DNA of 64,000 nucleotides from sequence record PQ015378.1; one strand, given 5' to 3'. Below, in pieces: positions 44,583-58,250 of the stretch. How positions within the stretch are numbered: position 1 is the stretch's first letter; every line of letters begins with the position of its first letter. The notes under the pieces are model-generated. The model searched no databases. It had not been told where the DNA came from and worked only from the letters and a program-made list of their open reading frames with translations. A program made the translations under genes and the position numbers.

Positions 44583-45848
44583 TTATCCCTTCACGCAGAG
44601 GACTTGTTTGAGAGTGTGGACGATGTCGACCAGTTCAGCCTGAGCTGCCATCACGTCATCGATGTTCTTGTAGGCCTTTGGAGTTTCGTCCAGTACGCCT
44701 TCATCCTTACGGCACTCGATACCTGCAGTGTCACGGATATGATCTTCCAGAGTGAAGGTACGCTCTGCCGCCTTACGGGACATGATACGACCTGCGCCGT
44801 GGGAGCACGAGCAGAAGGACTCACGGTTACCCTTACCACGCACGATGAACGACTTGGCACCCATCGACCCAGGGATGATCCCCAACGTACCTTCATGAGC
44901 CGCTACGGCGCCCTTACGGGTAACCAGTACGTTCTCACCGAAGTGACGTTCTTCGGACACGTAGTTGTGGTGACAGTTGATCGCTTCCATGTCGGTATCG
45001 ATCGGGAGACCCAGAGTGCGGTGGATGGCATCCAGGGTAGCATGCATCATCACGGTACGGTTCAGCGCTGCGAAGCGTTGGGCCCAGGTTACTGCTTCCA
45101 GGTAATCGTTGTAGTACTTCGATCCCTGAGGTAGATAAGCCAGGTCTTGGTCAGGCAGGTTGATAAAGAAGCGACGCATCTCTTCTTTAGCCATGTTGAT
45201 GAAATAAGTCCCGATAGCGTTACCGATACCACGTGAACCAGAGTGGAGCATTACCCACACACGTTGTTCTTCGTCCAGACAGAGTTCAACGAAGTGGTTG
45301 CCTGTCCCAAGAGTACCGATGTGATTCCAGGCACGGTTTGCGGCTTTGCCGAGTTTCGGGTGGCGAGCAACGATCTGGTCCAGATGCACGCGGAGCTTGG
45401 TAGCTTCATCACGAACTGCTTTGACTGGATGATCGAAGACTTTCACCGAACCCCATGCACCGCGGTCCATTGGACCACCGTTATCCGTACGACCATGCGG
45501 TACGGCCGCTTCGATAGCTGCGCGTACGTGCCCCAGGGAATCCGGCAGGTCTTCTGCGCGGGCGTTCAGACGATACGCAGCCATACCACAACCCAGATCA
45601 ACACCTACGGCGGCTGGGATGATCGCACCGACAGTGGAGATCACCGAACCGATGGTTGCACCTTTACCGACGTGAACGTCAGGCATTACTGCCAGGTGGG
45701 ACTTGATGAATGGCAGGGCAGCCAGGTTCTTCAGCTGTTTGATTGCGTCTGGTTCGACTGGTACGCCGACGGTCCAGGCTTTGATCGGCTTGGAACCTTG
45801 TTCTGGTTCACCACCGAGAATTTCGAAAGTGCGTTTCACTTGTTTCAT
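44583..45848 (-). CDS. rtcB: RtcB RNA ligase (3'-phosphate/2',3'-cyclic phosphate to 5'-OH)
   Basis: MPDVH, GVDLGCG, GTLGTGNHF, HSGSRG, HHNY, RKGA, PGSMG, SHGAGR, DETPKAYK motifs. Confidence 0.96.
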   Translation of the reverse strand: MKQVKRTFEILGGEPEQGSKPIKAWTVGVPVEPDAIKQLKNLAALPFIKSHLAVMPDVHVGKGATIGSVISTVGAIIPAAVGVDLGCGMAAYRLNARAEDLPDSLGHVRAAIEAAVPHGRTDNGGPMDRGAWGSVKVFDHPVKAVRDEATKLRVHLDQIVARHPKLGKAANRAWNHIGTLGTGNHFVELCLDEEQRVWVMLHSGSRGIGNAIGTYFINMAKEEMRRFFINLPDQDLAYLPQGSKYYNDYLEAVTWAQRFAALNRTVMMHATLDAIHRTLGLPIDTDMEAINCHHNYVSEERHFGENVLVTRKGAVAAHEGTLGIIPGSMGAKSFIVRGKGNRESFCSCSHGAGRIMSRKAAERTFTLEDHIRDTAGIECRKDEGVLDETPKAYKNIDDVMAAQAELVDIVHTLKQVLCVKG

Positions 45849-45875
45849 ACAAACCTCACACGGATGGAATTGAGA

Positions 45876-46217
45876 TTAAGCGCGTTTTACAAAACCGAAA
45901 CTGAGCACGTAACGTGTGCCTTTAGTCACGGTAGTTACACTGTGTGTTGCGATGTCTGGTCGGAACAGAGTAAAGAACCGATTGCTGATGATTACTTCAT
46001 CATGCTCCGGGACACCACCAGCTTTCGCATTCCACAGGTAGATGTTCAGACGGTAGTGTCGATGGTTTGGCGCAGGATCACGATGTCGTGGAATACCTGA
46101 ACCTACGGGATAACGCAGCAGGTACAGATCCCACTTAAACCGACTGAAGAACTTCCAACGATTCAGAAGCTCTAACTTTTCATAGCCGGTACCTTGACGG
46201 CCAGCTTCCCATTTCAT
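45876..46217 (-). CDS. minimal 2OG-Fe(II) oxygenase
   Basis: LLRYPVGSGIPRHRD (HxD), THSV (distal His), TRYVLS (2OG-binding Arg). Confidence 0.8.
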   Translation of the reverse strand: MKWEAGRQGTGYEKLELLNRWKFFSRFKWDLYLLRYPVGSGIPRHRDPAPNHRHYRLNIYLWNAKAGGVPEHDEVIISNRFFTLFRPDIATHSVTTVTKGTRYVLSFGFVKRA

Positions 46218-46229
46218 CGAACACCTCCG

Positions 46230-46595
46230 TTAGTTATTGCGTGGGTGGTACAGATCGTTCAGTACCCAACCCCATTGGCCGATGAATTCCAGTTCTGGAT
46301 ATTTCAGGCTCGGTCGTTGGATAGCCCGACTGTTATTGTGGTTGTGGATAACGTCACGCATTTGAGAACCGTAATGCATCCACGACAGATGTAGACGACC
46401 CATGATGTCTGGATCCGCCTCTATCAGCATGTTCTGGTAGAGCTCGTACTCCACTTCATGCTGTGCCAGAAACTCGACCGTTTGAATATGGCCCATGTGT
46501 ACTGAAGGAGACTTACGAGAAGTCTCGGATTCGAGCATATCGAAATGCCGCTCACGATTGATCAGAAGCAACTTGCGGTCGAAATCAGAAAGCAT
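46230..46595 (-). CDS. hypothetical protein
   Basis: GGAG RBS. Confidence 0.7.
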   Translation of the reverse strand: MLSDFDRKLLLINRERHFDMLESETSRKSPSVHMGHIQTVEFLAQHEVEYELYQNMLIEADPDIMGRLHLSWMHYGSQMRDVIHNHNNSRAIQRPSLKYPELEFIGQWGWVLNDLYHPRNN

Positions 46596-46609
46596 GTGGA
46601 CTCCGTATA

Positions 46610-47125
46610 TCAGTTGGCTGGTACGTCAATTTCTTCACATGGTACCAGGGGAAGGGTTTCTTCCATGTCGTTGATGGCTTTGGTGATCGCCTCGTCAATG
46701 TACAGGAACTGGACAAATCGGTGATACTGGGATACCTTACCGGAGTCAATGTAGTTCATGTAGTGGTGACAGCCTTCGAACATACGCTCGAAGAACAGCT
46801 CCACCGTGCGGTGGAACAAGTCGATGTGTTCGCGTGTCATGTTTGCACCGCGAACGATGACCATCGAGTTATCTTTGTTCAGTTTGTGCTCTTCACGAAT
46901 TTGTGCTTCCGCTTTACGGAATGCATCGTGCAGATCCAGGAAACCTTCTTTACGTTCCTCACCCCAGATGCGATCGAACACCAGTGCGCCGAGGACCACG
47001 TGGTGATCGAGTTCTTCGGTGGTCAGTGTGCTACCGAGCTCCAGGGATTTGGAGCACAGGGGAACCCCGAGTTGATCTTTCAGTTCAGGGGTGAGGAATT
47101 TACCGTACTGCTTGAGATGCTTCAT
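46610..47125 (-). CDS. hypothetical protein
   Basis: AGG RBS. Confidence 0.7.
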   Translation of the reverse strand: MKHLKQYGKFLTPELKDQLGVPLCSKSLELGSTLTTEELDHHVVLGALVFDRIWGEERKEGFLDLHDAFRKAEAQIREEHKLNKDNSMVIVRGANMTREHIDLFHRTVELFFERMFEGCHHYMNYIDSGKVSQYHRFVQFLYIDEAITKAINDMEETLPLVPCEEIDVPAN

Positions 47126-47156
47126 TGTAAGTACCTGTTTGGAGTTGACGAAATAA

Positions 47157-47174
47157 GGGAGGCTTTCGCCTCCC
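47157..47174 (-). terminator. hairpin terminator
   Basis: GGGAGGC-GAAA-GCCTCCC-TTATTT on the - strand. Confidence 0.75.
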
Positions 47175-47179
47175 TTAAA

Positions 47180-47503
47180 TCAGGACCGACCCTTTAACTG
47201 CATGAAACGATGTAGATTCAGTAGAGCTTCAGTATCTACGCTTCCACGATCAACCATCTCCATTAACTGGGTGATGGTGACTTCCTCTGGTTCCCACTGA
47301 TCTTCCAAGCCGTAGCAGGAACAGTGAGATCCATGTACTTCGAAATACTTGCCATCCTTGTAGTACAGCACGTAAGAACTACCGGAGTAGTCCTCGTAAG
47401 TGTAGTCTGCATGGATAACATGAGCTCCGTCGAGATCGTTGGCCGCGTTTCCACGGTAGTTGCTGATTACATCGGACACATCAGAAAAATCGTTGTAAAA
47501 CAT
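47180..47503 (-). CDS. conserved-looking acidic phage protein (GSHCSCYG motif)
   Basis: YEDYSGSSYVLY...GSHCSCYGLEDQWEPEE; own promoter at 47573-47600. Confidence 0.7.
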   Translation of the reverse strand: MFYNDFSDVSDVISNYRGNAANDLDGAHVIHADYTYEDYSGSSYVLYYKDGKYFEVHGSHCSCYGLEDQWEPEEVTITQLMEMVDRGSVDTEALLNLHRFMQLKGRS

Positions 47504-47572
47504 TTTGGTGATTCCATTGACAAGGCGAGATTGCCCGCTGCATTCTCTTTTAATAGTCAATGGTCAGTCCTG

Positions 47573-47600
47573 TATACTGTATCGCCACCAGTATTTTATT
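47573..47600 (-). promoter_or_regulatory. middle-type promoter
   Basis: AATAAAATACT-N8-TACAGTATA. Confidence 0.7.
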
Positions 47601-47602
47601 AC

Positions 47603-47632
47603 GGCATAGAGCCTCCCGAAGGGAGGCTCTAT
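47603..47632 (-). terminator. hairpin terminator closing the ncRNA cassette
   Basis: ATAGAGCCTCCC-TTCG-GGAGGCTCTAT. Confidence 0.8.
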
Positions 47633-47886
47633 TAATAGTGTTATGCATGCCTTTCAAGGTCGGCCAACTACACCCCCAGAAACCAGAGGTCATGTTCAGC
47701 ATGCCGCCGCAGCGCTAATCAATTCAGAATCGTCCCGATGCGAATCCGCACCATCTGGGGACGACCTCAAAAGAAGAGCTAACCACGTTCCGATCGTGCG
47801 CCGAGTCAAGGCTGGCACGAACTGTGGTATAGAGATTGACAGTCTCTGTTATATGTCGCTCTACGAAACCACTAAGCGTAGGCCTT
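47633..47886 (-). ncRNA. stand-alone ~250-nt structured RNA with a tRNA-Asp anticodon-loop mimic
   Basis: own promoter and terminator; no - strand ORF of 60 aa or more; many helices including AGAGA-CTGTCAA-TCTCT. Confidence 0.65.
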
Positions 47887-47887
47887 A

Positions 47888-47917
47888 CATACTATCATGA
47901 TGACAGTAATTTATTTC
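47888..47917 (-). promoter_or_regulatory. middle-type promoter overlapping the radical SAM gene stop
   Basis: GAAATAAATTACT-N8-GATAGTATG. Confidence 0.75.
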
Positions 47918-48804
47918 AGGAACGTTCCACAGCTAGCTTGAACGTCAGTGCCCACGCGTGGGATCACTTTCACCCGAGCGTCGGGCAAACGAGAACGGAT
48001 GTATCCAGCCAGGTATTGGATATGTCCTTCAACCGGTTCTTTCGAGTAATGTCCCACTGGTGGGTTGTAACGAACGATGTTCCAGTTGACATCGACAGCG
48101 TATTCCTTGATCGCATCAACAACACGCTTTACATCACCCAGGGAATCATTCTCCCCGTCAATGAATGCGTAATGGATCTTTGGCTTCTTACCAGTAGCTT
48201 GCTGCCATTCGAACAACTTATCCAAACCAGCTTCCGGGTTCAGGGCTTTAGGGAGCCACCGTTTGCGGAACTTTGGATTCATGCTGTAGATTGAGTAATA
48301 GATCTCTGGGTACACTGCGGGGTTCTTGAAGATCTGGTAGAACTCGATGCCCGTTACCTCATGTGGAATGATCGTCGATATCAGGAACTTGTATTCCAGT
48401 CCGTGTGACATCGCTAGGTCAGCGAGGCGTTCCAGTACTTCGTCTGCGTTGTCCAAGAAGATCTTATTAGCCAGTGGCTCGCCACGGGCCATGAAGTTGA
48501 AGTGAACCATCTTCGCAGGGACGCCACCTTTACGACATTGCTCAGCGTAGTACTGCATGACTTGTCCAGCTTGTTGTAGATATTCGTCAACGGTAACATC
48601 ACGTGCTTTGTTCTGACCTGTGGCAGTCAGCCAACACATCCGGCATGCTTTCTCGCAACCGGTCTGTGAAGACAGGTAAATGATGAAGTAATCGTCAACC
48701 CGGCGAACGAAACGTGCCTCGATCATCCCGTCGTCTACACGACATTCGAAGTTAACTGATTGGTCGAGTTGGGAATGATGCTCTTTGAAGATTAGTTGCG
48801 ACAT
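47911..48804 (-). CDS. RlmN/Cfr-like radical SAM protein
   Basis: SSQTGCEKACRMC (CxxxCxxC), MARGEPL, NIVRYN, GTDVQASCG (counterpart of RlmN GxDIxAACG). Confidence 0.85.
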   Translation of the reverse strand: MSQLIFKEHHSQLDQSVNFECRVDDGMIEARFVRRVDDYFIIYLSSQTGCEKACRMCWLTATGQNKARDVTVDEYLQQAGQVMQYYAEQCRKGGVPAKMVHFNFMARGEPLANKIFLDNADEVLERLADLAMSHGLEYKFLISTIIPHEVTGIEFYQIFKNPAVYPEIYYSIYSMNPKFRKRWLPKALNPEAGLDKLFEWQQATGKKPKIHYAFIDGENDSLGDVKRVVDAIKEYAVDVNWNIVRYNPPVGHYSKEPVEGHIQYLAGYIRSRLPDARVKVIPRVGTDVQASCGTFLK

Positions 48805-48828
48805 GGTAAACCTCTTTTAGGATTGAAG

Positions 48829-48854
48829 GCATAAAGGTCATCCGAAGATGACCC
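48829..48854 (-). terminator. terminator of tRNA operon 1
   Basis: GGTCATC-TTCG-GATGACC-TTTATGCC. Confidence 0.8.
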
Positions 48855-48864
48855 AATGCATGTA

Positions 48865-48940
48865 TGGTGCCGCCAACAAGGATCGAACTCGTGACCTTCT
48901 CATTACAAGTGAGCTGCTCTACCGACTGAGCTATAGCGGC
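48865..48940 (-). tRNA. tRNA-Thr(TGT)
   Basis: 76-nt cloverleaf, loop CTTGTAA, encoded CCA. Confidence 0.95.
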
Positions 48941-49028
48941 TGGAGCTGAGAGCTGGATTCGAACCAGCGCGTGCGTTTGAGCAAAAGGATTTGCAATCCC
49001 CTACATTCGTCCACTCTGCCATCTCAGC
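48941..49028 (-). tRNA. tRNA-Cys(GCA) with long variable arm
   Basis: 88 nt; loop TTGCAAA, U73 discriminator, CCA; variable hairpin TGC-TCAAAC-GCA. Confidence 0.85.
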
Positions 49029-49036
49029 GAATATAA

Positions 49037-49110
49037 AGGAACAGGATCGTCCAGGGTAGCTACACCCCCAACCCACTTGTGACCGAAACTAACTCGGACA
49101 ACCTGTTCCT
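49037..49110 (-). ncRNA. structured spacer RNA within the tRNA operon
   Basis: AGGAACAGG-TTGTCC ... GGACGA-T-CCTGTTCCT closing helix with internal hairpins. Confidence 0.45.
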
Positions 49111-49115
49111 ATGTT

Positions 49116-49203
<88 letters not shown>

Positions 49204-49209
49204 TGAAAT

Positions 49210-49295
49210 TGGTGGGGATGGAGGGACTCGAACCCACACGGTCTAAGACCGCTGGAACCTAAATCCAGTGCGTCTACCAATTTCGCCACATCCCC
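49210..49295 (-). tRNA. tRNA-Leu(TAG)
   Basis: class II cloverleaf, loop TTTAGGT, CCA. Confidence 0.95.
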
Positions 49296-49299
49296 GTCG

Positions 49300-49328
49300 T
49301 ATATCATTACGCGGGGAGTATTTCTTTA
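49300..49328 (-). promoter_or_regulatory. middle-type promoter of tRNA operon 1
   Basis: TAAAGAAATACT-N8-AATGATATA, beginning at the upstream stop codon. Confidence 0.75.
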
Positions 49329-51308
49329 CGCGTCCCCTAGAAGCTCCAACACTGGGCGCCAGACGTTCATTTGGTTCTGGGTTGCTCGACTCACGATCTG
49401 TAGAGACATCCACTGATCCATGGCACCAGGGAAGATACCATTGTTACCGTTACGCATGACGCATTCTGTTGGACTAACTGCTTCCTGACAGATGATTCGC
49501 TGATACGGCGAACCCCCTCCACGTTCTGGCTGTAACCCTAGCTCTAGCAGTGTGAAGTCGGCAAACTTAAGTCCCATGTCGGTGACCGGGGCCGAGTTCG
49601 TCAGACGATAAATGATCCGGTTAAACTCCGACCTGTCGGCACTTGTTGTTGGGAATTCCTCAGGTACCGGCGTAGTTCCTGGATTGGTACCGGTCATTAG
49701 TCGGACATGGAAGCGCTTGCCAAATTTCTCAACGACCTTTGGTGTTGTTTCATTACCGATCACTCCCAGACCGAACAAGTGGTCGTATGGTAGACCCCAA
49801 CGAATTGGCAGTTTGGGCATGTAGATGATTTTACCGTCCAGAATCACTTTTACCCAATCGGTATTATTATTGATTGTGAAACCACTGGTCTCTGTCTTAA
49901 CAGCGATAGCTAGCTCATCCCCAGTGAAGAACTCATCCGCCGTTAGCGTACCATAGTACCCATCAGTTTCATCGCCAACTATGATGTCTTTCGGGCCTGG
50001 GCCATCGACTGGCGCAGCTTTCTCGAATTCCAAGACCGGACGCCACCCATAGTGGGTAATCACGTTGATTGCTGGAGGGTTGAAGTCAGGATAGTTGAAG
50101 TTCTTAAGTCCCGAGTTAGAGCGAGCCACGCATGAGCCGCTCAATGCCGACGCCGCAAACTTCTCTTTACAGATAGTCATCCGTCCGTTGGCACCAGCCT
50201 GGATACCTAGGTCAGTATCTGTAAACTTCTCAAATTGCCCGCTGGATTCATGTACCTTGTACAACGTTCGGTTGTATTCGGATGCCGCCACGATACCAGG
50301 ATCATTCTGACCATATGCCGCGATCCATTCAGAAGGATTCTTCTCTGCTCCTTCCATCAAGCGAATTCGATAAGTATCCCCATTCGCAATAACCACTTTG
50401 GTTGAACCATCGATAGCACCAGCGTCTTCCAGCATCTGCCATGTGACGTTATAACGGACTGGTTTCTTCGCAACGAGGATAGTTCTTCCTTTAACTACAA
50501 ACTTCAACCACTCGGTAGGTCGAGCAATGTTGTTCCCTTTCGTTAGGCCCAACTGTGCAGCAAGACTGGTTCCCGAGATAACCTCTGCTTCAGAAAGAGT
50601 CCCCAGGTATTCATCACCAGTGATTGGATCGAAGTTCGAAGTATACACTGGTCCCTCATATACTCGAAGGTCTGCAATCTTCCCGACGAATGGTGTGTTG
50701 CCCGTGGGGTTCGGTTGGGCAGAACCATTGAGATACGTTCCCAAGAACCAGTCAATGCTTAGCTGCGCGCGTGAACCAGCGTATTGCGTAGTCCCAACTT
50801 GTCGTCCGTTGATATACTGGATCCACGTTGTGCCAGTTCTCACCCAGGCGACGTGTTGCCACGCGTTGACAGAGTAAACTTGGTTAGATAACAATGCTCC
50901 GTTTTCACTCGCTGCCCCGAAGTGGAATTGACAGGCATTACCCGCTGCGATAGCACACAGTATTCCGCCTTGGAATACTGATTGTTGCCACTGGCCGAAG
51001 ATACTGCGGTTCCCTTGGTTGGTTTCAACCTTAGCCCAATACTCAATCGTGAAGCTTCCTTCGAGTAAGTTCGGCATGCGTCCAAATGGTAACCTTAGGT
51101 ATTTGTATGCACCCCCAGTAAACTGCATGGACTTCATCCCAACTAGAGGTGCATCATCACTAACGGTAACGCCCATATTGGTTACAGGAACAAGGCGTTC
51201 CGATTTGTCTACGATATTTGTACTGCCGACTTGTTCATCTGAAGGATCGAGCCAAAGAACAGGTTTATACACCCTCCGACCCAAGACGTTAAGCAAAAGT
51301 TCATTCAT
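49326..51308 (-). CDS. putative virion protein: MNELLL peptide, LamG/ConA-like domain and two paralogous domains
   Basis: FTIEYW, WQHVAWVRTG...YINGRQV, GKIADLRVY (LamG); repeated W.K...G......K.P.R...VRLM.G...WRPVLE domain. Confidence 0.8.
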   Translation of the reverse strand: MNELLLNVLGRRVYKPVLWLDPSDEQVGSTNIVDKSERLVPVTNMGVTVSDDAPLVGMKSMQFTGGAYKYLRLPFGRMPNLLEGSFTIEYWAKVETNQGNRSIFGQWQQSVFQGGILCAIAAGNACQFHFGAASENGALLSNQVYSVNAWQHVAWVRTGTTWIQYINGRQVGTTQYAGSRAQLSIDWFLGTYLNGSAQPNPTGNTPFVGKIADLRVYEGPVYTSNFDPITGDEYLGTLSEAEVISGTSLAAQLGLTKGNNIARPTEWLKFVVKGRTILVAKKPVRYNVTWQMLEDAGAIDGSTKVVIANGDTYRIRLMEGAEKNPSEWIAAYGQNDPGIVAASEYNRTLYKVHESSGQFEKFTDTDLGIQAGANGRMTICKEKFAASALSGSCVARSNSGLKNFNYPDFNPPAINVITHYGWRPVLEFEKAAPVDGPGPKDIIVGDETDGYYGTLTADEFFTGDELAIAVKTETSGFTINNNTDWVKVILDGKIIYMPKLPIRWGLPYDHLFGLGVIGNETTPKVVEKFGKRFHVRLMTGTNPGTTPVPEEFPTTSADRSEFNRIIYRLTNSAPVTDMGLKFADFTLLELGLQPERGGGSPYQRIICQEAVSPTECVMRNGNNGIFPGAMDQWMSLQIVSRATQNQMNVWRPVLELLGDA

Positions 51309-51339
51309 GATAGTTTCTCCTGTAAACATACCATAACAG

Positions 51340-51363
51340 CATAAAACCCAGCCTAGGCTGGGC
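51340..51363 (-). terminator. terminator of tRNA operon 2
   Basis: CCCAGC-CTAG-GCTGGG-TTTTATGC. Confidence 0.75.
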
Positions 51364-51374
51364 GATATGTTGTT

Positions 51375-51461
51375 TGGTACCGGAAGCGAGATTCGAACTC
51401 GCAATCCTCAAGGGCGGGAGGGCTTAAAGCTCCAGTGTATAGCCAATTCCACCATTCCGGC
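51375..51461 (-). tRNA. tRNA-Leu(TAA)
   Basis: class II cloverleaf resembling leuZ-type; loop TTTAAGC; C31-C39 mismatch; CCA. Confidence 0.85.
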
Positions 51462-51464
51462 AAT

Positions 51465-52310
51465 GTCGGTCCAACTTCCAGGATTGAAGGCCCCAGTCTC
51501 CCGTAGATCATCGTGGGGATAGATCGCGGTTGGATCGCTTTTCATCCTAGTCTGTAGCAACCCCTGACGGCTTTCGCTAGAGGGGAAACCCGGAGACTAG
51601 GTCTATCTATCTAACTCACCTCTAAGCAGCTTCAGGATGCGATGGAGGGTAAGTATTCAGGAATAGGTGCATATCAGGCAACCCCACCGGGTACGCCCAT
51701 ATGCGCGTGGGAAACGCCCTTCCCAATTGGAGCTATGACCACCCGAAGGCTCACTGCTAAGCATGGCCCAGGAGTCCCTTTACGGGGGATGACCTGGGGG
51801 AGCTTCACGTGACGGGACTGTCACCTTCTATGGCGCTGTATTCCAGCAGCTTCACGTAAGCCCAGTGACGGAATCTACTAATCCGTTGTAGCCACCTTAT
51901 CTCGCTTCGGTGGTAATGCGCGTGTCTTAAACCGGGATCATCCAAGACGCTTTAGACAATTGCTCAGGGTACGGGACTCGCCTTCCCATGCTAGTCGCTG
52001 GCTATGATCATTCCAGCAACCGTCGTAGGGTTCGATAGTCTCGTTAGCATGCAGGCTTTGCCCTAGGTAGTTGGGACATCGCTAACGAACTTGCCCACGC
52101 TTTTGATCGCGAGGGACTCTCCACCGCTAGCTGCGATGGGTTTGTAAGAGGTTGATGGAACGATCCTCTACCGTCATCTATTCGGACTCCGGCGACCTTT
52201 TCAGCGCAGTGGGGTGGAGTGCACTTACCCAACACCCTGCCATGGCTCTTACGAACTAGGTTGCCCAAGGCGGGTTAGGCCAGGGGACTTGCAGACCTAA
52301 GTCTGTATGG
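51465..52310 (-). ncRNA. giant (~850 nt) structured non-coding RNA, GOLLD/ROOL-like context
   Basis: no credible ORF; more than 15 helices read by eye; co-transcribed between tRNA-Ser and tRNA-Leu. Confidence 0.75.
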
Positions 52311-52313
52311 AAC

Positions 52314-52403
52314 TGGAGGCAAGACTGGGATTTGAACCCAGGGGGCCTTCGAAGGCCCGTCCCCTTAGCAAGGGGATGTGTTAAACCACTCCACCATCTT
52401 GCC
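52314..52403 (-). tRNA. tRNA-Ser(GCT)
   Basis: class II cloverleaf, loop TTGCTAA, CCA. Confidence 0.93.
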
Positions 52404-52408
52404 GAAAC

Positions 52409-52484
52409 TGGCGGGCTAGACTGGACTCGAACCAATAACACGTGGCTTTGGAGGCCACTGTTCTGCCAATTGAACTACTAACCC
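52409..52484 (-). tRNA. tRNA-Trp(CCA)
   Basis: 76 nt, loop CTCCAAA, G73, CCA. Confidence 0.93.
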
Positions 52485-52503
52485 GATGAGGCGTAACCTC
52501 TCG

Positions 52504-52533
52504 TATACTATTACCCTCGGAGTATTTTATTTC
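52504..52533 (-). promoter_or_regulatory. middle-type promoter of tRNA operon 2
   Basis: GAAATAAAATACT-N8-AATAGTATA immediately after a stop codon. Confidence 0.8.
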
Positions 52534-53274
52534 TCAGAATGGTTCTGGCAGGAAGTTGGTCGCATACTTCAGGTAATTACACATGCGTAGATTACCATAG
52601 AATCGAGGTACGTTGTTTGCATATGCCGTCCACCCTCCGAGATGGAGTGTATTGAGGTTATCCAGGTTGGCAGGTGATTTCACTTGCATGTGGTCAAGAA
52701 CAGGTTGGTTGGTCGATGACGAAAGGTATAGCTGTATATTTTGCTTTACCCCATTAAACCAGTATCTGATCTTTCCATCTTTGGTGCATGTGATTGCATG
52801 GTGCGTTAGTCTTCGCCCATAGTTACTTGCTCTAAGCATGACCCTCCCTTCATTACGGGTAGCATCATTACCGGTGCTCGCTTCGCACAACAGCGGCCAG
52901 CCGCCATAACCAGCGTCACCAATCCGCATCATTACCCCGTAGAGACCATTAGCATTGGAAAGATACAGCATGTTTGTCCAGACGTTTACATCCCCAACGA
53001 TCTCATCCCACCATTCGATGGTCCATGACGTACCACCTAAGTTGATTACCGGGTTTAGGTTCATCAGGAAGTGTGAGTATACACTAGGGCAGCTCAGACT
53101 ACCTTTCCCATTGACGAGATGATCTTTTGTGAACACTGCACCGCCAGATAGCTGGATTGGTCGGTCATTAATGGTTTCCTTCCCTTGGTCCATATCCAGG
53201 AAAAAGATAACATCCCCAGTTTCTGGTGGCTCTGGGTTAACCCACGTGGGTGTCCCTAATAGTAATTCATTCAT
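52534..53274 (-). CDS. MNELLL plus LamG/ConA-like putative virion protein
   Basis: WTIEWW, HHAITC...YWFNGVK, FYGNLRMC. Confidence 0.8.
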   Translation of the reverse strand: MNELLLGTPTWVNPEPPETGDVIFFLDMDQGKETINDRPIQLSGGAVFTKDHLVNGKGSLSCPSVYSHFLMNLNPVINLGGTSWTIEWWDEIVGDVNVWTNMLYLSNANGLYGVMMRIGDAGYGGWPLLCEASTGNDATRNEGRVMLRASNYGRRLTHHAITCTKDGKIRYWFNGVKQNIQLYLSSSTNQPVLDHMQVKSPANLDNLNTLHLGGWTAYANNVPRFYGNLRMCNYLKYATNFLPEPF

Positions 53275-53990
53275 CAGTCAAGTTCCAGTGGTTTGATTGT
53301 GTAGTTTCGCGTATAGCGCGCGCCGAGGCTCAGGCGAATACGCCCACGGTTTCCTAATTGGTTGATCATGCCCGAACCAGAACTATTGATCTGCATATAG
53401 GCTAGAGACGATAGATTCGCACCCACCGGGTAATTCGGTGTGTTGTAAACACCACCAGTTCCGTTTGCCAACATCTGTAGGACACCATTTCTGAATACCG
53501 ATACACGACCATTCTTACAGGACAGTGCCATATTGGTATCAACGTTCAAGGATGCTGCTTTTGAGATAGGTGGGTTCCAGATAGAGTTCACTGCACCCAT
53601 CGACCCACCGACTTGTAATCGATTACCGAAACCAGTATCTCCCCAACGCGATAGGATCCCTTGGCCAGCTACGGCAGAAGGCAATGTCAGTTCCGTAGCA
53701 TATGCCGTTCCAGCAGAGACCGTGTTTCGAAAAGACCATTCTAATGTCCAGTCTTTATCCTGCAAGTTGAAAGGTGTTGCAAAAGTGATCTGCATACCAG
53801 ACACGTTGGTGCCCAATTTCAAAGTCTTATGTCCATTGATTTCCAAATCGTCGGGTGTTACCGTACCGTATTTGGTGTATGTATGGACTACACCCATCAG
53901 GTCAGACTCTGTCTCTGGGTCATAGAGAAAGATAGTCGTTCCTTCGTCTTCCTGGAACTCTTCTCCAGTTGCTAAAAGTAATTCATTCAT
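53274..53990 (-). CDS. MNELLL plus LamG/ConA-like putative virion protein (paralog of the previous)
   Basis: WTLEWS, RWGDTGFGNRL vs RIGDAGYGGWP, ALSCKNG..SVFRNGV, ARYTRNY. Confidence 0.8.
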   Translation of the reverse strand: MNELLLATGEEFQEDEGTTIFLYDPETESDLMGVVHTYTKYGTVTPDDLEINGHKTLKLGTNVSGMQITFATPFNLQDKDWTLEWSFRNTVSAGTAYATELTLPSAVAGQGILSRWGDTGFGNRLQVGGSMGAVNSIWNPPISKAASLNVDTNMALSCKNGRVSVFRNGVLQMLANGTGGVYNTPNYPVGANLSSLAYMQINSSGSGMINQLGNRGRIRLSLGARYTRNYTIKPLELD

Positions 53991-54024
53991 GGTCGTCACC
54001 ATTTACCTGTATACAAAGGATAAC

Positions 54025-54047
54025 GGCATAAAGGAGCCGAAGCTCCT
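54025..54047 (-). terminator. hairpin terminator
   Basis: GGAGC-TTCG-GCTCC-TTTATGCC. Confidence 0.75.
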
Positions 54048-54243
54048 AAGGGTTTCGAATACCGTAGTCAATCACCCGGTTGAGTTGTTCTTGTGTTGGG
54101 ATACGTTGACGATGTCGTTCAGCACATTCCATATCGAACTCCGCCACACGCTTACGAGATTCTTCAATCCGTTGTGCTCTTTCCTCAGGGGTCTGATTAG
54201 GTAACATGTTGTTAGCCAGGTCGATCAAAGCTTTCAGACTCAT
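54046..54243 (-). CDS. small helical paralog 4
   Basis: C-terminus RQRIPTQEQLNRVIDY; ATGA coupling. Confidence 0.7.
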   Translation of the reverse strand: MSLKALIDLANNMLPNQTPEERAQRIEESRKRVAEFDMECAERHRQRIPTQEQLNRVIDYGIRNP

Positions 54244-54407
54244 AGCGAAATCACCCGCTCTAATAGTTCTCGGGAAACTTCCTGGGCTTTGAATTCACGG
54301 CCCAGACGTTCATTGGTTTGACGCATTCGATCTTGTGCAGCTTGCAAACTGGAAGCATGGGTTCCATTACGGGTACGTGCTTCCTCTATCAGTTTCTCTA
54401 GGGTCAT
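54240..54407 (-). CDS. small helical paralog 3 (55 aa, not in the ORF track)
   Basis: read manually: MTLEKLIEEARTRNGTHASSLQAAQDRMRQTNERLGREFKAQEVSRELLERVISL. Confidence 0.7.
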   Translation of the reverse strand: MTLEKLIEEARTRNGTHASSLQAAQDRMRQTNERLGREFKAQEVSRELLERVISL

Positions 54408-54414
54408 GATTCAC

Positions 54415-54594
54415 CTAACAACGTTCGTCCCAGTTCTTCTGGACATCGGATGGAATGGGAATACCATGTCGGTCTTGATCTTCCCAGGCTTGGAACATAG
54501 CGACCTTAGCCTCGTATCGCTCACGATCTTTACGATCCTCTTCCTGACGCCATTTGTGGAAGTCGAATGAGGGCGGTTCGATTAGAGGGTACAT
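54415..54594 (-). CDS. 59-aa charged protein (not in the ORF track)
   Basis: read manually: MYPLIEPPSFDFHKWRQEEDRKDRERYEAK...DERC. Confidence 0.55.
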   Translation of the reverse strand: MYPLIEPPSFDFHKWRQEEDRKDRERYEAKVAMFQAWEDQDRHGIPIPSDVQKNWDERC

Positions 54595-54755
54595 GTTTTG
54601 GCCAACAGTTCTGGAGTTACTCGTTGGGCTTCGAAATCAGCTTCGGCTTTACGATTGAACTCGATGGATCTTTCACGGGCGGCCTTTAGTCTAATAGCTT
54701 TGGTGGCACCCATTCGTTTACGAGCAGCGTTACAGAGTTCCTCCAGTCCACTCAT
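54582..54755 (-). CDS. small helical paralog 2
   Basis: MSGLEELCNAARKR...AQRVTPELLAKTCTL. Confidence 0.7.
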   Translation of the reverse strand: MSGLEELCNAARKRMGATKAIRLKAARERSIEFNRKAEADFEAQRVTPELLAKTCTL

Positions 54756-54937
54756 AACGTACACCGTTTCTCTAAGACCTCGGGGGTCATGCGCTGTGCT
54801 TTCATTTGCGCTTCGAGTTGTCCGTTCAGTGCGACCATGCGCCCACGCCCATATGAACGGAATTGTTCTTCAGTCATACCACGTTGTTTCGCTGCTCTAC
54901 CACGTAAGCGGTCTATCAATCCAGCTGAAAGAGCCAT
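54752..54937 (-). CDS. small helical paralog 1
   Basis: GAGGA RBS; ...AQRMTPEVLEKRCTL. Confidence 0.7.
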   Translation of the reverse strand: MALSAGLIDRLRGRAAKQRGMTEEQFRSYGRGRMVALNGQLEAQMKAQRMTPEVLEKRCTL

Positions 54938-54988
54938 GTTAGTTCCTCACGGTATTTGTACTATAAATCTAAGTACCCAGTAATATCC

Positions 54989-55015
54989 GGCATAAAGGGG
55001 GAACCCCCTTATGTC
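54989..55015. terminator. hairpin terminator
   Basis: CATAAAGGGGG-AA-CCCCCTTATG. Confidence 0.65.
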
Positions 55016-55733
55016 AATCAGGAACGTATTCCAATACTGGTTTCCAACCTCGGTTGAAGTCTGCCCCTGTCAATGGATGACGATAGAGACCTTTGTATGC
55101 TCCACTAGCATTACCCCGCACCAATCCGTCAGTGCCGGAAGCGATCTCTTGGATGATAGGGCTAGAACCACCAGTACTGTTTACGCCAGTCAAACCGAGT
55201 GCTGTTGGACTCATGTTAGCCAATGCAGGACCCTCAAGGTCAGTACCTGCCGAATCTGCCATCAGGCCATACATGATCTTGTTCCACTCAGTGCCGACTG
55301 TTTGTGGTCCACCAGCTGCGTTGTTACTTCCGGTATATGGATTAACATTACAGCCATTCATCAACCGAACTCGGAACTTGTATCCTTGGATCTCGATGAT
55401 TTTGTTCTGTGCTGCAGTGACGACCCCAATGCCGTTGAGTAGGTTCCATGACACCGTATTGCGCACAGACGATTTAGGGATATATAGTACGTTCTCTTTG
55501 TATGCCACTTTCACCCAACCCAGACCTGTGGCAGCTATAGCGGCGGCGGTAGGCTTAGTACCGAATGTCATACCCACAGCGGTAACTAGATCATCGTACT
55601 TGATGAGTGCGCTCTCGGCCATTTCACCAAAGAAACCTAATTGTGCGTCACCCTTCAGGATAACGTCTGGACCGGGCAACCCTTTCGGATAATCCCCTTT
55701 GTCTTTCATAACGTTTAGCAGTTGTTCGTTCAT
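55014..55733 (-). CDS. MNEQLL putative virion protein (single copy of the domain repeated in 49326-51308)
   Basis: GPDVILKGD..LGFFGE, WVKVAYKENVLYIPK, FRVRLMNG, EWNKIMY, GWKPVLE. Confidence 0.8.
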   Translation of the reverse strand: MNEQLLNVMKDKGDYPKGLPGPDVILKGDAQLGFFGEMAESALIKYDDLVTAVGMTFGTKPTAAAIAATGLGWVKVAYKENVLYIPKSSVRNTVSWNLLNGIGVVTAAQNKIIEIQGYKFRVRLMNGCNVNPYTGSNNAAGGPQTVGTEWNKIMYGLMADSAGTDLEGPALANMSPTALGLTGVNSTGGSSPIIQEIASGTDGLVRGNASGAYKGLYRHPLTGADFNRGWKPVLEYVPD

Positions 55734-55761
55734 GGTAAATTCCCCTCTAACATACCATAAC

Positions 55762-55790
55762 GACATAAGAGCATCCCGGAGGATGCTCTC
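55762..55790 (-). terminator. terminator of tRNA operon 3
   Basis: GAGCATCC-TCCG-GGATGCTC-TTATGTC. Confidence 0.75.
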
Positions 55791-55796
55791 ATTAAT

Positions 55797-55872
55797 TGGC
55801 TCCGAGACCAGGGTTCGAACCTGGGACCAACGGATTAACAGTCCGCTGCTCTACCGACTGAGCTATCTCGAA
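55797..55872 (-). tRNA. tRNA-Asn(GTT)
   Basis: 76 nt, loop CTGTTAA, G73, CCA. Confidence 0.95.
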
Positions 55873-55917
55873 TTGAAACTGTGGTGGTCGTATACTATTG
55901 TACACAACTCACCGAAA

Positions 55918-55993
55918 TGGTCGGAGTGGCAGGACTCGAACCTACGACCTCCTGGTCCCAAACCAGGCGCCCTACCAACTAGGCTACACTCCG
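55918..55993 (-). tRNA. tRNA-Pro(TGG)
   Basis: 76 nt, C1-G72, loop TTTGGGA, CCA. Confidence 0.95.
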
Positions 55994-56000
55994 ATGAAAC

Positions 56001-56077
56001 TGGCGGTTCCTACGGGGCTCGAACCCGTGACCTCTCGCGTGACAGGCGAGCGCTCTAACCGACTGAGCTAAGGAACC
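56001..56077 (-). tRNA. tRNA-Asp(GTC)
   Basis: 77 nt, loop CTGTCAC, G73, CCA. Confidence 0.95.
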
Positions 56078-56079
56078 TT

Positions 56080-56241
56080 TTAAGCGTGACGCTTGCGGCT
56101 AAGTGCGTAGTCCGCATCATTAACCGCTTCTTTGAGAGCTTGACGATCAAGCTTGAGATCTTTCCAACTGAGTCTGCTGCAGCAGCGACAATCAGCTGGG
56201 CCCATGTCCTTAAGAGGACGCTGATGAATCTTCACTTTCAT
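56080..56241 (-). CDS. 53-aa basic CxCC protein inside the tRNA operon
   Basis: GGAGAG RBS; MKVKIHQRPLKDMGPADCRCCSRL... Confidence 0.55.
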   Translation of the reverse strand: MKVKIHQRPLKDMGPADCRCCSRLSWKDLKLDRQALKEAVNDADYALSRKRHA

Positions 56242-56257
56242 GACAAGCTCTCCGAAA

Positions 56258-56344
56258 TGGTGGATCAAGGCTGGAATTGAACCGCTAGCCGGGGGCGGGG
56301 TGGTTACAGCACCCTGTCAGTAGCCATCTGACTCTACAAGATCC
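56258..56344 (-). tRNA. atypical tRNA-Tyr(GTA)-like gene
   Basis: GGGTG-CTGTAAC-CACCC anticodon arm, A73-CCA, TTCAATT T-loop; irregular acceptor, D and T stems. Confidence 0.65.
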
Positions 56345-56350
56345 GGAATG

Positions 56351-56442
56351 CATTGATAGCGCTCTAACCAGTAAGCTAACAGCCCTGTTCGATAGGCGGG
56401 CCTTCCGAGTCAAGGGAATTGAACCCAAGTTCTCTATCAATG
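56351..56442 (-). ncRNA. circularly permuted tRNA-like RNA (YrlA-type topology)
   Basis: order CATTGATAG - T arm - closed acceptor-like hairpin - D arm - CTATCAATG. Confidence 0.7.
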
Positions 56443-56477
56443 TCAAGATTAGTCATCGCAAGCGACAACTGCTCTCG

Positions 56478-56507
56478 TATACTATTACACACAAAGTATT
56501 TTATTTC
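56478..56507 (-). promoter_or_regulatory. middle-type promoter of tRNA operon 3
   Basis: GAAATAAAATACT-N8-AATAGTATA(CGAG). Confidence 0.8.
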
Positions 56508-56584
56508 TACGAGAGGGAACAACTGTGACTGGATCGCACTATCGCACTGATCCAATCACATATAGTTGTATACAAAACAACAAC

Positions 56585-57454
56585 TTACCCAATGAACACC
56601 ACTCTGGTATTCACGCGACCCAGTCGTGCCAACACACGGTACAGCTTGTTGATGTTGAAGTCGTCACTGTGGAAGCGACGATAAGCGTTAGTGATCACGA
56701 TGGTGTGGAAGTTCTTGTGGAACTGAGGGAAGTGTTCCAGCAGGTAGTCGTATGCCCACTTGGACTCCCAGAACCACTTACGGTGGGTAGTCATTACCTG
56801 AGCGCCATCACCCGGTTGAGACATGTCGATCGAGATCTCTTCATCCGGTTCAGCCGATACGAATGCAAGTGCCTTACGGACATCGGTCGTGTTGATCAGT
56901 TGTTGTTCCACGATGTTCTTGTGGAGGGTATCCATCTCCATCAGCTTGTACAGCACGGAGTAGCTGGAACGGTCGGTACGAGAATGCATGTCATCTACAT
57001 CGATGTGCACGTAGCCGTCGCCCAGGTTTTCCAGGAATACTTTCTGGAATTGCTTGAGGTCACCCAATGCTGGGCCGACCAGGAAAGAGGTATTGTCACG
57101 GACTTGTTTCCAGTCCGGCACCTGATCATAAGTCAGATGGGCAAACGAAGGCTTGTAGGTGATACTCGCCAGATGCATGGCGGCTACTTGGTCCGGTTGA
57201 TCGTAGACCAGTTCTTCACTATCACGTTCCGGTTCAGAGAACCAATAATGCAATGCATCGTAACGCACGTAAGTGCTCTGACCAATCAGTTGATCGACTA
57301 AACGCTTGGATGATGGCATCAGGTGGTAGAGGCCGGTGTACGAATTATCAGCACTGCAGACCGCGTAAGTGGTCAGTGGCATGAACTCGATTGGTTTTCC
57401 GTCATCCTCTAGAGCGACACGGCATTCTTGCATTGTGGAGCGGAGGCTTTTCAT
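56585..57454 (-). CDS. hypothetical protein
   Basis: AAGGA RBS; 289 aa. Confidence 0.75.
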   Translation of the reverse strand: MKSLRSTMQECRVALEDDGKPIEFMPLTTYAVCSADNSYTGLYHLMPSSKRLVDQLIGQSTYVRYDALHYWFSEPERDSEELVYDQPDQVAAMHLASITYKPSFAHLTYDQVPDWKQVRDNTSFLVGPALGDLKQFQKVFLENLGDGYVHIDVDDMHSRTDRSSYSVLYKLMEMDTLHKNIVEQQLINTTDVRKALAFVSAEPDEEISIDMSQPGDGAQVMTTHRKWFWESKWAYDYLLEHFPQFHKNFHTIVITNAYRRFHSDDFNINKLYRVLARLGRVNTRVVFIG

Positions 57455-57534
57455 TTCTGTATCCTTTCCCCTTACTGGGGTGTGGTGTCAGTATAAGTAG
57501 CGGTATTGCTACACAGCATAACTTCCCGAGTATT

Positions 57535-57939
57535 TTAACTCGGGAAGGTACCAGTGTAGATGTCGTAGAAGGCTGTACCGTAACGATCATTAGGCCAGCG
57601 CTTCTTGAATGCTTCGCGTGCTTCTTGCATTTGTTCTGGAGTCAGGATGATTTCATTGTAATCGAAATCATGCCAACCTAGGGTAACGAACCGTCCGGTC
57701 TTCGGATGGTAATAGAGATACTCGCCGCTATCGACAGGCATGAACAGAGTGTTCGCCTTCTCGTCCAGTTCTTTACGACGCTCGCGCTCAGCAGACAACC
57801 GCGACTCCCTTTCCAGCCAAGTCTCTTTCGGCTGCATCGATGGATACTCCACGATGTGCAGAATCGTCGGACGACGAATGTACGGGGTAGGTGCACAGAG
57901 CATGCGCATCTGTTCTTCTGTAACCAGGTATCCACTCAT
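57535..57939 (-). CDS. hypothetical protein
   Basis: ATGA coupling. Confidence 0.7.
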   Translation of the reverse strand: MSGYLVTEEQMRMLCAPTPYIRRPTILHIVEYPSMQPKETWLERESRLSAERERRKELDEKANTLFMPVDSGEYLYYHPKTGRFVTLGWHDFDYNEIILTPEQMQEAREAFKKRWPNDRYGTAFYDIYTGTFPS

Positions 57940-58112
57940 TTGCTTTTCACCGTTACGCGGTAAGCTTTGCTCCAGAGGTCTACTCGGGCAAAGGGACGGA
58001 ATTTATGGCGCCCTGCACCAACACGAATCATTTCACCGCCAGCTTCAAGTTCGATGGGTGTGACTTCGAGTTGGGAGAACAGTTTGTACACGGGGTTGAC
58101 GAGGTATTCCAT
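57936..58112 (-). CDS. small hypothetical protein
   Basis: GGAG RBS; begins MEYLVNP. Confidence 0.65.
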   Translation of the reverse strand: MEYLVNPVYKLFSQLEVTPIELEAGGEMIRVGAGRHKFRPFARVDLWSKAYRVTVKSK

Positions 58113-58132
58113 TGCTATCTCCAAATGAGCCG

Positions 58133-58160
58133 GACATAAGGCTGCCCGCAGGCAGCCCTA
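58133..58160 (-). terminator. hairpin terminator closing an sRNA cassette
   Basis: AGGGCTGCC-TGCG-GGCAGCCTT-ATGTC. Confidence 0.75.
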
Positions 58161-58250
58161 AGAGGTGAAGCCACAGAAGGATTACTTCTAGAAGCGCTCC
58201 GAGGATGCTCCGGCGAGTGACTGGTGGTGTCGAAGCATGCAGATCTTCAA
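58160..58250 (-). ncRNA. stand-alone ~100-nt sRNA candidate
   Basis: lies between a consensus promoter and a terminator; only a 16-codon ORF without a good RBS; short hairpins. Confidence 0.5.

Follow-up and report, generated by a model that had tools for sequence, protein, structure and literature searches.

A probable new class of large structured noncoding RNA in the tRNA operons of Pseudomonas jumbo phages

What does a phage encode in 852 nucleotides (nt) between two transfer RNA (tRNA) genes if no protein can be found there? The question is raised by Pseudomonas phage RVTF4 (PQ015378.1), a phage from pond water with a genome of 302,537 base pairs (bp), in which ARAGORN and Rfam delimit a tRNA-free gap at 51462–52313 on the minus strand (–), flanked by tRNA-Ser(GCU) and tRNA-Leu(UAA). 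We analyzed a 64,000-nt stretch of this record, hereafter the window, whose coordinates equal those of the record (BLAST of 51300–52550 against GenBank phages matched RVTF4 at 100%); the RNA and tRNA features described below lie on the minus strand. A preliminary description made from the letters alone had proposed a large RNA of a GOLLD-like or new class in a jumbo phage, and the genome size bears out the last point. We consider it highly probable that the gap encodes a member of an uncatalogued class of ~600- to 850-nt multidomain noncoding RNA (ncRNA) in the tRNA operon of Pseudomonas jumbo phages, which would be released by tRNA enzymes and act in trans. Comparative analysis indicates that its fold is under selection and consists of a swappable 5' module, a central domain closed by a long helix, a variable expansion, and a 3' junction paired with the tail of the molecule.

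Operon layout, coding capacity, and homologs

The order of tRNA-Trp, tRNA-Ser, an ~850-nt gap, tRNA-Leu, and a terminator, as read in the preliminary description, was recovered by ARAGORN, by Rfam, and by the presence of a hairpin followed by a T-run. Both programs place tRNA-Trp(CCA) at 52409–52484 (Rfam tRNA score 63.3 bits) and tRNA-Ser(GCU) at 52314–52403 (57.3 bits), the 3' end of the latter forming the 5' boundary of the large RNA. The 3' boundary is the ribonuclease P (RNase P) site at the 5' end of tRNA-Leu(UAA), located at 51375–51461 (39.5 bits), and 3' of this tRNA a terminator-like hairpin, GCCCAGCCUAGGCUGGGU, is followed by UUUAU (51346–51363). A promoter had been claimed at 52504–52533, and this holds in part. 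The sigma-70-type consensus did not uphold it, as a scan gave one weak 9/12 site (52551–52524), not above chance; what stands before tRNA-Trp is a recurring promoter-like 15-mer, TAATAGTATACGAGA, at 52499–52513, 14 nt upstream of the tRNA and the probable start of the operon. The 15-mer has two exact copies in the 64 kb, the second (56473–56487, –) ahead of the next tRNA cluster, and a copy with three mismatches (55886–55900, –) between tRNA-Pro and tRNA-Asn. In phage Phabio, too, the 15-mer immediately precedes the homolog, and related GTA[AG]ATA[GC]TAT motifs occur upstream of the RNAs in phages Viktualia and 201phi2-1 and in locus L026 (L numbers are our handles for sequence loci). The motif looks like a dedicated phage promoter that would drive operons of tRNAs and ncRNA. 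Given the evidence from the motif, the tRNAs, and the terminator, we therefore regard the unit of promoter motif, tRNA-Trp, tRNA-Ser, large RNA, tRNA-Leu(UAA), and terminator as real.

GenBank lists coding sequences (CDSs) alone in this region of PQ015378.1, none of them between 51309 and 52533, and no tRNA feature at 45300–58550, compared with the ten tRNAs called by ARAGORN in the whole window. The gap was correctly described as lacking a credible open reading frame (ORF): the longest ORF touching it has 74 amino acids, stop-free stretches in RVTF4 and eight homologs are no longer than those in shuffled sequence, and a search of the gap and its homologs for a conserved small ORF or a recoded gene found none. 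A protein gene in a nonstandard code, in favor of which a suppressor-like tRNA(UCA) called in one relative can be cited, would have to be reconciled with these chance-length stretches and with insertions and deletions (indels) that are not multiples of three.

Known RNA families were searched with Rfam 15. At gathering scores, the whole window returned tRNAs only. Permissive searches (E ≤ 10) were applied to five homologs, those of RVTF4, UViG 3300028260_000001 (hereafter UViG28260), L019, Phabio, and L026; they yielded tRNAs and noise, with no match to GOLLD, ROOL, OLE, HEARO, group I introns, RNase P RNA, transfer-messenger RNA (tmRNA), 6S RNA, or riboswitches, which settles in the negative the family check that the preliminary description had suggested. 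The best match other than a tRNA (E of ~0.006) was below threshold, antisense, and placed on a tRNA. One might still suspect a diverged or decayed version of a known RNA, be it GOLLD, ROOL, a group I or group II intron, RNase P RNA, or tmRNA, as the context resembles that of GOLLD and ROOL, phage RNAs near tRNA islands, tRNA-Leu(UAA) is a classic host of group I introns, and HNH endonuclease genes lie nearby in phages D6 and Psa21. The group II signal, however, comes from a single fragment model covering D1–D4, at 13.9–16.6 bits against a gathering score of 49 bits, and neither a reverse transcriptase or maturase nor a domain V-like element accompanies it; ARAGORN found no tmRNA in the window; and no gene is interrupted, as the RNA is bordered by intact tRNAs, by the stop codon of an ORF, or by a promoter motif. 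We therefore hold such a relationship to be very unlikely. In the literature searched, on GOLLD and ROOL, jumbo-phage ncRNA, and viral structured RNAs, the RNA is undescribed; a submotif may be contained in a 2023 catalogue of ~8,500 IMG/VR candidates. Comparison with Rfam and the homologs did not bear out short-motif resemblances to conserved regions of RNase P RNA, a 5S rRNA loop, the core of the hammerhead, a T-box specifier, or the group I R/S elements (CAGACUA, AUAGUC); the group I-like motifs proved to be halves of the covarying kissing loop and pseudoknot.

Homologs came from scanning IMG/VR and JGI metagenomes for motifs, from a scan that took the neighboring RlmN-like protein as its seed, and from profile searches. 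They total ~14 distinct sequences from one phage clade: 10 fused forms, 3 split forms, and 1 minimal leader. The fused set comprises RVTF4, D6, Psa21, Phabio (L020), UViG28260 (four identical loci, on three IMG/VR contigs and the corresponding JGI metagenome contig), L013, L016, L019, L021, and L045, the last from the same sample as L022. These are phage genomes or fragments of ~300–317 kb, and the RNA lies on the tRNA strand directly 5' of tRNA-Leu(UAA). Pairwise identity among the homologs is 49–85%, and BLAST finds a single copy in RVTF4. The 709-nt gap at the same site in D6 aligns with RVTF4 as a mosaic, some blocks exceeding the flanking tRNAs in conservation and others varying with paired changes, and Psa21 has a divergent copy downstream of a polysaccharide-lyase ORF. 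The class is confined to one clade of Pseudomonas jumbo phages of ~300–325 kb, which includes RVTF4, D6, Psa21, Phabio, and Viktualia as well as uncultivated relatives.

In 185,579 genomes of bacteria and archaea, a scan produced chance matches only. Among the pattern-scan loci, L005–L007, L011, L012, L015, L017, and L018 were discarded as chance after nhmmer or BLAST, as were L030–L034, one of which falls within genes for carbamoyl-phosphate synthase, and the majority of L036–L063. Within the tRNA arrays of the relatives, we observed a 5' tRNA half (comprising the acceptor, the D arm, and the start of the anticodon stem) separating the RNA from tRNA-Leu in D6 (L002:6834–6878) and Psa21 (L003:6790–6833), and an HNH endonuclease gene just past tRNA-Leu in both; the fragment and the gene are signs of endonuclease-driven rearrangement. 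The array of L013 holds a tRNA with anticodon UCA (L013:9711–9787, –), labelled SeC by ARAGORN, that may be opal-suppressor-like.

Covarying helices and tertiary contacts

The evidence for structure rests on covariation, not on folding energy: the energy of the single sequence was no better than that of shuffles (z = –1.4 for the minus and –1.0 for the plus strand) and is uninformative. For the central domain (51932–52089; alignment A7), we built a covariance model, R1, from seven sequences and with nested helices only, namely M3, its inner hairpin, M9, M5, and M6. The model found all fused homologs, including RVTF4 (E = 0.004), as well as the split relatives L026 and L027 (E of ~1e-10) and Viktualia (E = 0.005). 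In the ten-sequence alignment, 94.8% of the cells were paired, and 27 of the 41 pairs had changed on both sides. None of 500 shuffles reached the observed pairing, compensatory counts, or covariation score, and two matched the count of further pair types; sliding the partners reduced pairing to 29–39%. Column-wise pair counts on a MAFFT alignment (A5) suffered from register shifts in the variable helices, and the covariance-model alignment was used instead.

In RVTF4, helix M3 joins 52081–52089 with 52040–52048, hairpin M5 spans 51993–52021 with the loop UGAUCA at 52005–52010, and hairpin M6 spans 51932–51946 with the loop AUGAUC. The loops of M5 and M6 form a 5-bp kissing contact that lies outside R1 and is paired in all sequences, with double changes at five of five pairs. 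Its versions are GACUA/UAGUC in six sequences, GAUCA/UGAUC in RVTF4, L021, and L045, AGUCG/CGACU in L026 and L027, and CAUCG/CGAUG in Viktualia. We regard this predicted contact as the strongest single evidence for a defined three-dimensional RNA structure. Also outside R1, a central pseudoknot joins 52054–52065 with 51972–51982 (UAGGGC..GAG with CUC..GCCC), in which GAG/CUC, the form of most homologs, is replaced by GCC/GGC in RVTF4 and L045 and, by hand reading, by GAC/GUC in L026; its three variable pairs are 93.1% paired in the model-fitted alignment, a value lowered by a one-column offset of the L026 and L027 rows.

The 3' domain (51462–51654) was analyzed in a nine-sequence MAFFT alignment with helices H1 (ACUURCC/GGYRAGU), H2, H3, and H5 specified. 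Standard pairs filled 98.4% of the cells, and 6 of the 21 pairs were compensatory; at most one of 500 shuffles was as good, and partners slid by one to three columns gave 28–43% pairing and zero to one compensatory pair. Hairpin H1 (51614–51654, ACUUACC/GGUGAGU) is 100% paired and presents an invariant loop, CCCUCCAUC..CUGAAGC (51641–51649). The pair of columns 7 and 40 is A–U in two sequences, G–C in five, and G–U in two, and the split relatives have ACUUGG/CCAGU (L026) and CACAC/GUGUG (Viktualia) as counterparts of the stem. There follows a three-way junction (51518–51611, alignment A4) of H2 (GUAGAU/AUCUAC, 51605–51611 with 51518–51524), H3 (CCUAG/CUAGG, 51594–51601 with 51546–51553), the variable H4 with a GAAA cap (51561–51585), a conserved joiner AUGAAAAG (51538–51545), and H5 (51526–51538). 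Within the 3' tail (51462–51517), GUUGGA (51470–51475) pairs with the H5 loop UCCAAC (51529–51534), forming a pseudoknot 8 nt before tRNA-Leu. Across homologs this pseudoknot lies 7–18 nt before the tRNA and shows double changes at two positions: UCCAAC/GUUGGA in RVTF4 is matched by UCCAGC/GCUGGA in D6 and Psa21, CCCAGC/GCUGGG in five sequences, and CCCAGU/GCUGGG in UViG28260. RNAalifold on the plain MAFFT alignment, which provided the first structural map, had proposed a long-range helix, GGGUAAGU/ACUUGCCC, competing with H1. It was set aside because H1 truly covaries, whereas the long-range helix shows G–U/A–U changes only; a pairing between the 5' part and the H1 loop was retained in a shorter, inferred form.

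Between the two domains lie hairpins M7 (51892–51913) and M8 (51868–51886, ACGGA-UUAGUAGAU-UCCGU), together at 51868–51913, and a variable region (51655–51867) with a GAAGGUGACAGUCCCGU motif at 51812–51828 and an insertion of ~130 nt that is missing in D6; the spacing from M8 to H1 ranges from ~50 to ~250 nt across homologs. M7 occurs as CCACC/GGUGG, CCGA/UCGG, and GCCG/CGGC. M8 is the most widely kept element, its version ACGGAC/GUCCGU standing directly before tRNA-Leu in Viktualia and 201phi2-1. Subhairpins of the variable region covary, with CCCAGG/CCUGGG opposed to CCCAGUAG/CUACUGGG and UGGGAA/UUCCCA to GAGGAA/UUCCUC, and its GAAGGUGAUAGUCCCGU motif is shared with Phabio. On the 5' side, hairpins M1 (52121–52139) and M2 (52094–52115), spanning 52094–52139 and likewise read from aligned sequences, exist as CCAUCGC/GCGGUGG, CCAUUCCC/GGGAGUGG, CGUCUCUC/GAGAGAUG, and CACUGAGCC/GGCUUGGUG (M1) and as CCCUCGC/GCGUGGG, CCUUUGC/GCGAAGG, and CCUAGCCC/GGGAUAGG (M2). 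Double-sided changes were thus read from the alignments in M1, M2, M7, M8, and several hairpins of the variable region. Conserved G–U pairs are numerous, found at single positions in, for example, 9 of 10, 8 of 9, or 7 of 9 sequences; on the opposite strand these would be A–C mismatches, and the RNA strand is therefore that of the tRNAs.

The 5' end is the most mobile part. A 5' extension (52248–52313) consists of the hairpin CAGAC-UUAG-GUCUG (52292–52305) and a second hairpin, CCCCUGGCC..GCC-UU-GGG (52264–52286). The two-hairpin extension is kept in D6, UViG28260, L021, and L045 with compensatory stems (CCGGUU/AACCAG in D6, CUACUG/CGGUAG in L045, CCU/AGG and GGU/ACC in UViG28260) and is absent where an ORF for a PL7 lyase precedes the RNA, in Psa21, L013, L016, and L019. 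The adjacent 5' module of RVTF4 (52144–52252), which we call type A, is near-identical in six homologs and replaced by unrelated sequence in Psa21, L021, and Phabio, giving at least three unrelated versions. In L016, a module of the Psa21 type stands in tandem with, and upstream of, a type A module (L016:6282–6400, –), which is a snapshot of module swapping.

All 5' variants keep GGA-(0–4 nt)-GGG, or GGGUGUUGGG in RVTF4 (52228–52237, within the type A module) and UViG28260, complementary to CCCUCC of the H1 loop, its proposed partner. Five of the seven sequences of types A and B have the purine tract in the form GGAUGUUGGG; L021 has GGAGGG, Phabio GGACGAGGG, L026 GGACAGAGGG, and Viktualia GGAUGAGGG. 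The pairing would close the molecule over ~600 nt; it is inferred from conservation alone, because the CCCUCC target is invariant and leaves no room for covariation.

The helices listed in the preliminary description can be judged against these comparative data. Backing was found for most of them: CAGAC/GTCTG of the 5' extension, CCCAGG/CCTGGG and TGGGA/TCCCA of the variable region, TCGTTAGC/GCTAACGA (M3), TGCTGG/CCAGCG (M5), CCACC/GGTGG (M7), ACGGA/TCCGT (M8), CCTAGTCT/AGACTAGG (H3), and CCCCT/AGGGG with its GAAA cap (H4). The repeated words are also present, the two copies of ACGTGAAGCT being the two strands of the helix that encloses a subdomain. Other proposals found no support or were peculiar to RVTF4: GGGTG/CACCC is broken by GGATG in most homologs, ATCGC of the pair ATCGC/GCGAT pairs inside M1 instead, the register of GTGAC/GTCAC is not conserved, GTCTT/AAGAC occurs in RVTF4 only, and the alternative partner GGAGACTGGG is unsupported or specific to RVTF4. 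The broader claim of a large structured RNA agrees with covariation across many helices, the kissing loop, and the pseudoknots.

The same data bear on the possibility that the gap is a nonfunctional spacer or the remnant of a decayed gene or mobile element. Its content is variable, with module swaps, a 130-nt indel, and the tRNA fragment at the 3' side in D6 and Psa21, as a spacer would allow. Dozens of pairs are nevertheless kept through double-sided changes, the kissing loop is retained in four versions, and conservation in some blocks is above that of the adjacent tRNAs. Spacer, remnant, and recoded gene, taken as one alternative, are extremely unlikely.

Release, split relatives, and mode of action

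Under the model we favor, the large RNA would be cotranscribed with the tRNAs. Its 3' end would come from RNase P cleavage in front of tRNA-Leu and its 5' end from 3' processing of tRNA-Ser, the latter following established knowledge on the processing of bacterial tRNA operons. A discrete stable molecule would be released, with the terminal hairpin and the 3' pseudoknot protecting its ends, and in the infected cell the folded RNA or ribonucleoprotein would act in trans, not as a leader in cis.

Trans action is proposed because distant relatives appear to express the modules as two RNAs with promoter motifs and terminators of their own. These relatives are L026 and L027, whose RlmN-like protein is 63–65% identical, and Viktualia (322,655 bp), which was found through RNA similarity. 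In piece 1, located after tRNA-Trp or tRNA-Ser, M1/M2-like hairpins are combined with H1 and its CCCUCCAUC loop, and the RNA ends in a terminator of its own. Piece 2, headed by a separate promoter-like motif, carries the pseudoknot along with M3, M5, M6, and M8; it ends at a terminator in L026 and at tRNA-Leu in Viktualia. No counterpart of the 3' junction domain was found in the split-phage sequence examined. Phage 201phi2-1 has only a leader of ~110 nt before tRNA-Leu(UAA), with the M8-like hairpin ACGGAC/GUCCGU and a second hairpin. As the pieces are free-standing, we argue that the modules work as RNAs themselves, beyond a role as leader of tRNA-Leu. The series from the 110-nt leader of 201phi2-1 through the two RNAs of Viktualia to the fused 850 nt of RVTF4, together with the swappable 5' modules, would portray the growth of a large RNA by accretion.

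In Viktualia, a 33-amino-acid "hypothetical protein" (PV037725.1 75206–75307; L035:12192–12293) is annotated antisense to the 3' part of the central-domain RNA, and two tiny CDSs (L035:8825–8941 and 9073–9162) overlie piece 1. These small CDSs over ncRNA are probably spurious gene calls.

The chief rival holds that the RNA is an expanded cis-acting 5' leader of tRNA-Leu(UAA), which controls when or how efficiently this one tRNA matures, or protects it during maturation, and is degraded after RNase P cleavage. Each fused homolog abuts tRNA-Leu(UAA), the central-domain RNA of Viktualia ends there, 201phi2-1 has just the M8-like leader of ~110 nt at the same position, and the 3' pseudoknot lies 7–18 nt from the RNase P site. 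A leader does not account, however, for the central-domain RNA of L026 and L027, which has its own terminator and no tRNA-Leu downstream, or for piece 1, which ends in a terminator in both L026 and Viktualia. D6 and Psa21 have kept the RNA even though the remains of a dead tRNA set it apart from tRNA-Leu, and 600–850 nt with kissing loops and pseudoknots far exceed the needs of known tRNA leaders. We judge the leader explanation unlikely.

Several points weigh against a released, trans-acting RNA of defined fold. The processing and the trans action are deduced from sequence; the fused forms are always tied to tRNA-Leu(UAA), and 201phi2-1 retains a short leader there. Alignment A7 was fitted to the nested helices by R1, which favors those helices, and the RVTF4 row matches R1 weakly (22 bits, E = 0.004), with M6 read by hand. 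The family is narrow and its sequences are related (49–85% identity), and the significance from shuffling is inflated because the members are few and related. Finally, the pairing of the 5' part with the H1 loop lacks covariation, and its register differs among the variants.

What a trans-acting RNA would do is a matter of analogy. A scaffold or binding platform for phage takeover of tRNAs and translation, as proposed for GOLLD and ROOL, is a tentative suggestion that may well be wrong; we make it because of the neighborhood of tRNA clusters, RNA ligase, RlmN-like methyltransferase, and, in relatives, RtcB, and because of the GOLLD/ROOL precedent. A self-assembling particle seems rather unlikely: fused and two-piece forms would build the same assembly, within one molecule or in trans, held by the pairing of CCCUCC with GGA..GGG and by the M5–M6 kissing loops, possibly in domain-swapped form, and would serve infection by nucleus-forming jumbo phages, for example by caging or escorting phage tRNAs or by catalysis. 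Both kissing loops of RVTF4 carry the palindrome GAUC. If true, RNA-only quaternary assembly would have a third independent example among phages, and the first from Pseudomonas phages that are amenable to genetics.

We also recorded features around the operon. An RNA ligase and an RlmN-like radical S-adenosylmethionine methyltransferase are encoded downstream of the tRNA arrays (44583–48804, –), and the equivalent neighborhood of D6 (L002:10560–13815) additionally has RtcB; this tRNA-repair and modification neighborhood fits a tRNA-centered counterdefense or translation module. The operon is flanked by a "virion structural protein" (49326–51308, –) and a hypothetical protein (52534–53274, –) that share the N terminus MNELLL. 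A third hypothetical protein adjoins (53274–53990, –), and three consecutive hypothetical proteins occupy the matching site in D6. The pattern suggests a possible local paralog family, with the operon apparently inserted inside it. Farther upstream, ~200 unannotated nt between the promoter motif and tRNA-Asp (56262–56460, –) hold two elements resembling a T arm and a sequence similar to tRNA-Tyr(GUA) with a terminal CCA, called by neither ARAGORN nor Rfam. The part at 56360–56433 is kept in L026, L023, Psa21, and UViG28260, where a tRNA-Tyr is called nearby by ARAGORN or GenBank, and the element is probably a degenerate or unusual tRNA. A 126-amino-acid ORF at 47180–47560 is labelled "integrase" in this lytic-type jumbo phage.

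Comparison with known systems

RNAs linked to tRNAs provide the closest parallel for the ends of the molecule. As in mascRNA/MALAT1-type transcripts and the spacers of bacterial tRNA operons, the ends of the large RNA coincide with tRNA ends, and RNase P and tRNA 3'-end nucleases would therefore excise it without dedicated signals. Known spacers of bacterial tRNA operons are short and unstructured, whereas the RVTF4 RNA has 852 nt and an apparently conserved tertiary structure. Group I introns in tRNA-Leu(UAA) are likewise large and have a pseudoknot and peripheral kissing loops, and homing-endonuclease genes lie near the RNA in relatives of RVTF4. The RVTF4 RNA, in contrast, is located outside an intact tRNA and not in the anticodon loop, and it has no Rfam group I match; in Phabio the RNA begins at the promoter motif, and no exon is interrupted.

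ROOL is a large (~580–660 nt), pseudoknotted RNA of phages and prophages near tRNA islands, abundant and without a known protein partner. No Rfam match to ROOL was obtained in the five homologs, and the secondary structure is unrelated. ROOL itself forms an octameric cage. GOLLD, at ~800 nt, also occurs in phages and prophages, often near tRNA genes, and resembles the RVTF4 RNA in its pseudoknots and loop–loop contacts and in a 3' region better conserved than the variable 5' region. GOLLD assembles into an RNA-only cage of 14 copies. It differs in origin, its sources being Lactobacillales and samples of lake and sea water rather than nucleus-forming-type jumbo phages of Pseudomonas. RVTF4 and the four homologs searched with it fail the GOLLD model at E ≤ 10. 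The alternative of "GOLLD-like or new class" posed in the preliminary description can accordingly be divided: context and build are GOLLD-like, Rfam points to a new class, and membership in GOLLD did not hold. A place beside phage tRNA genes and a size of ~800 nt are traits of context and not peculiar to GOLLD. With no match to the GOLLD and ROOL family models, we therefore file the RNA as a new class among the large ornate RNAs of phage tRNA arrays.

The comparison also indicates why the locus matters. The RVTF4 record lacks annotation for the interval and its tRNAs, and the Viktualia homolog is overlain by a small, probably spurious ORF; both annotations can now be corrected. Large structured RNAs such as GOLLD, ROOL, OLE, and raiA are among the least understood RNAs of bacteria and phages, and GOLLD and ROOL are mostly metagenomic or found in hosts that are hard to work with. 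The RNA described here is carried by culturable phages, namely Psa21, D6, and Viktualia on Pseudomonas syringae, Phabio on Pseudomonas fluorescens SBW25, and RVTF4 itself, and deletion, compensatory mutagenesis, end mapping, pull-downs, and cryogenic electron microscopy should therefore be straightforward. It would represent a class unrelated in sequence to GOLLD and ROOL that shares their habit of sitting in a phage tRNA array.

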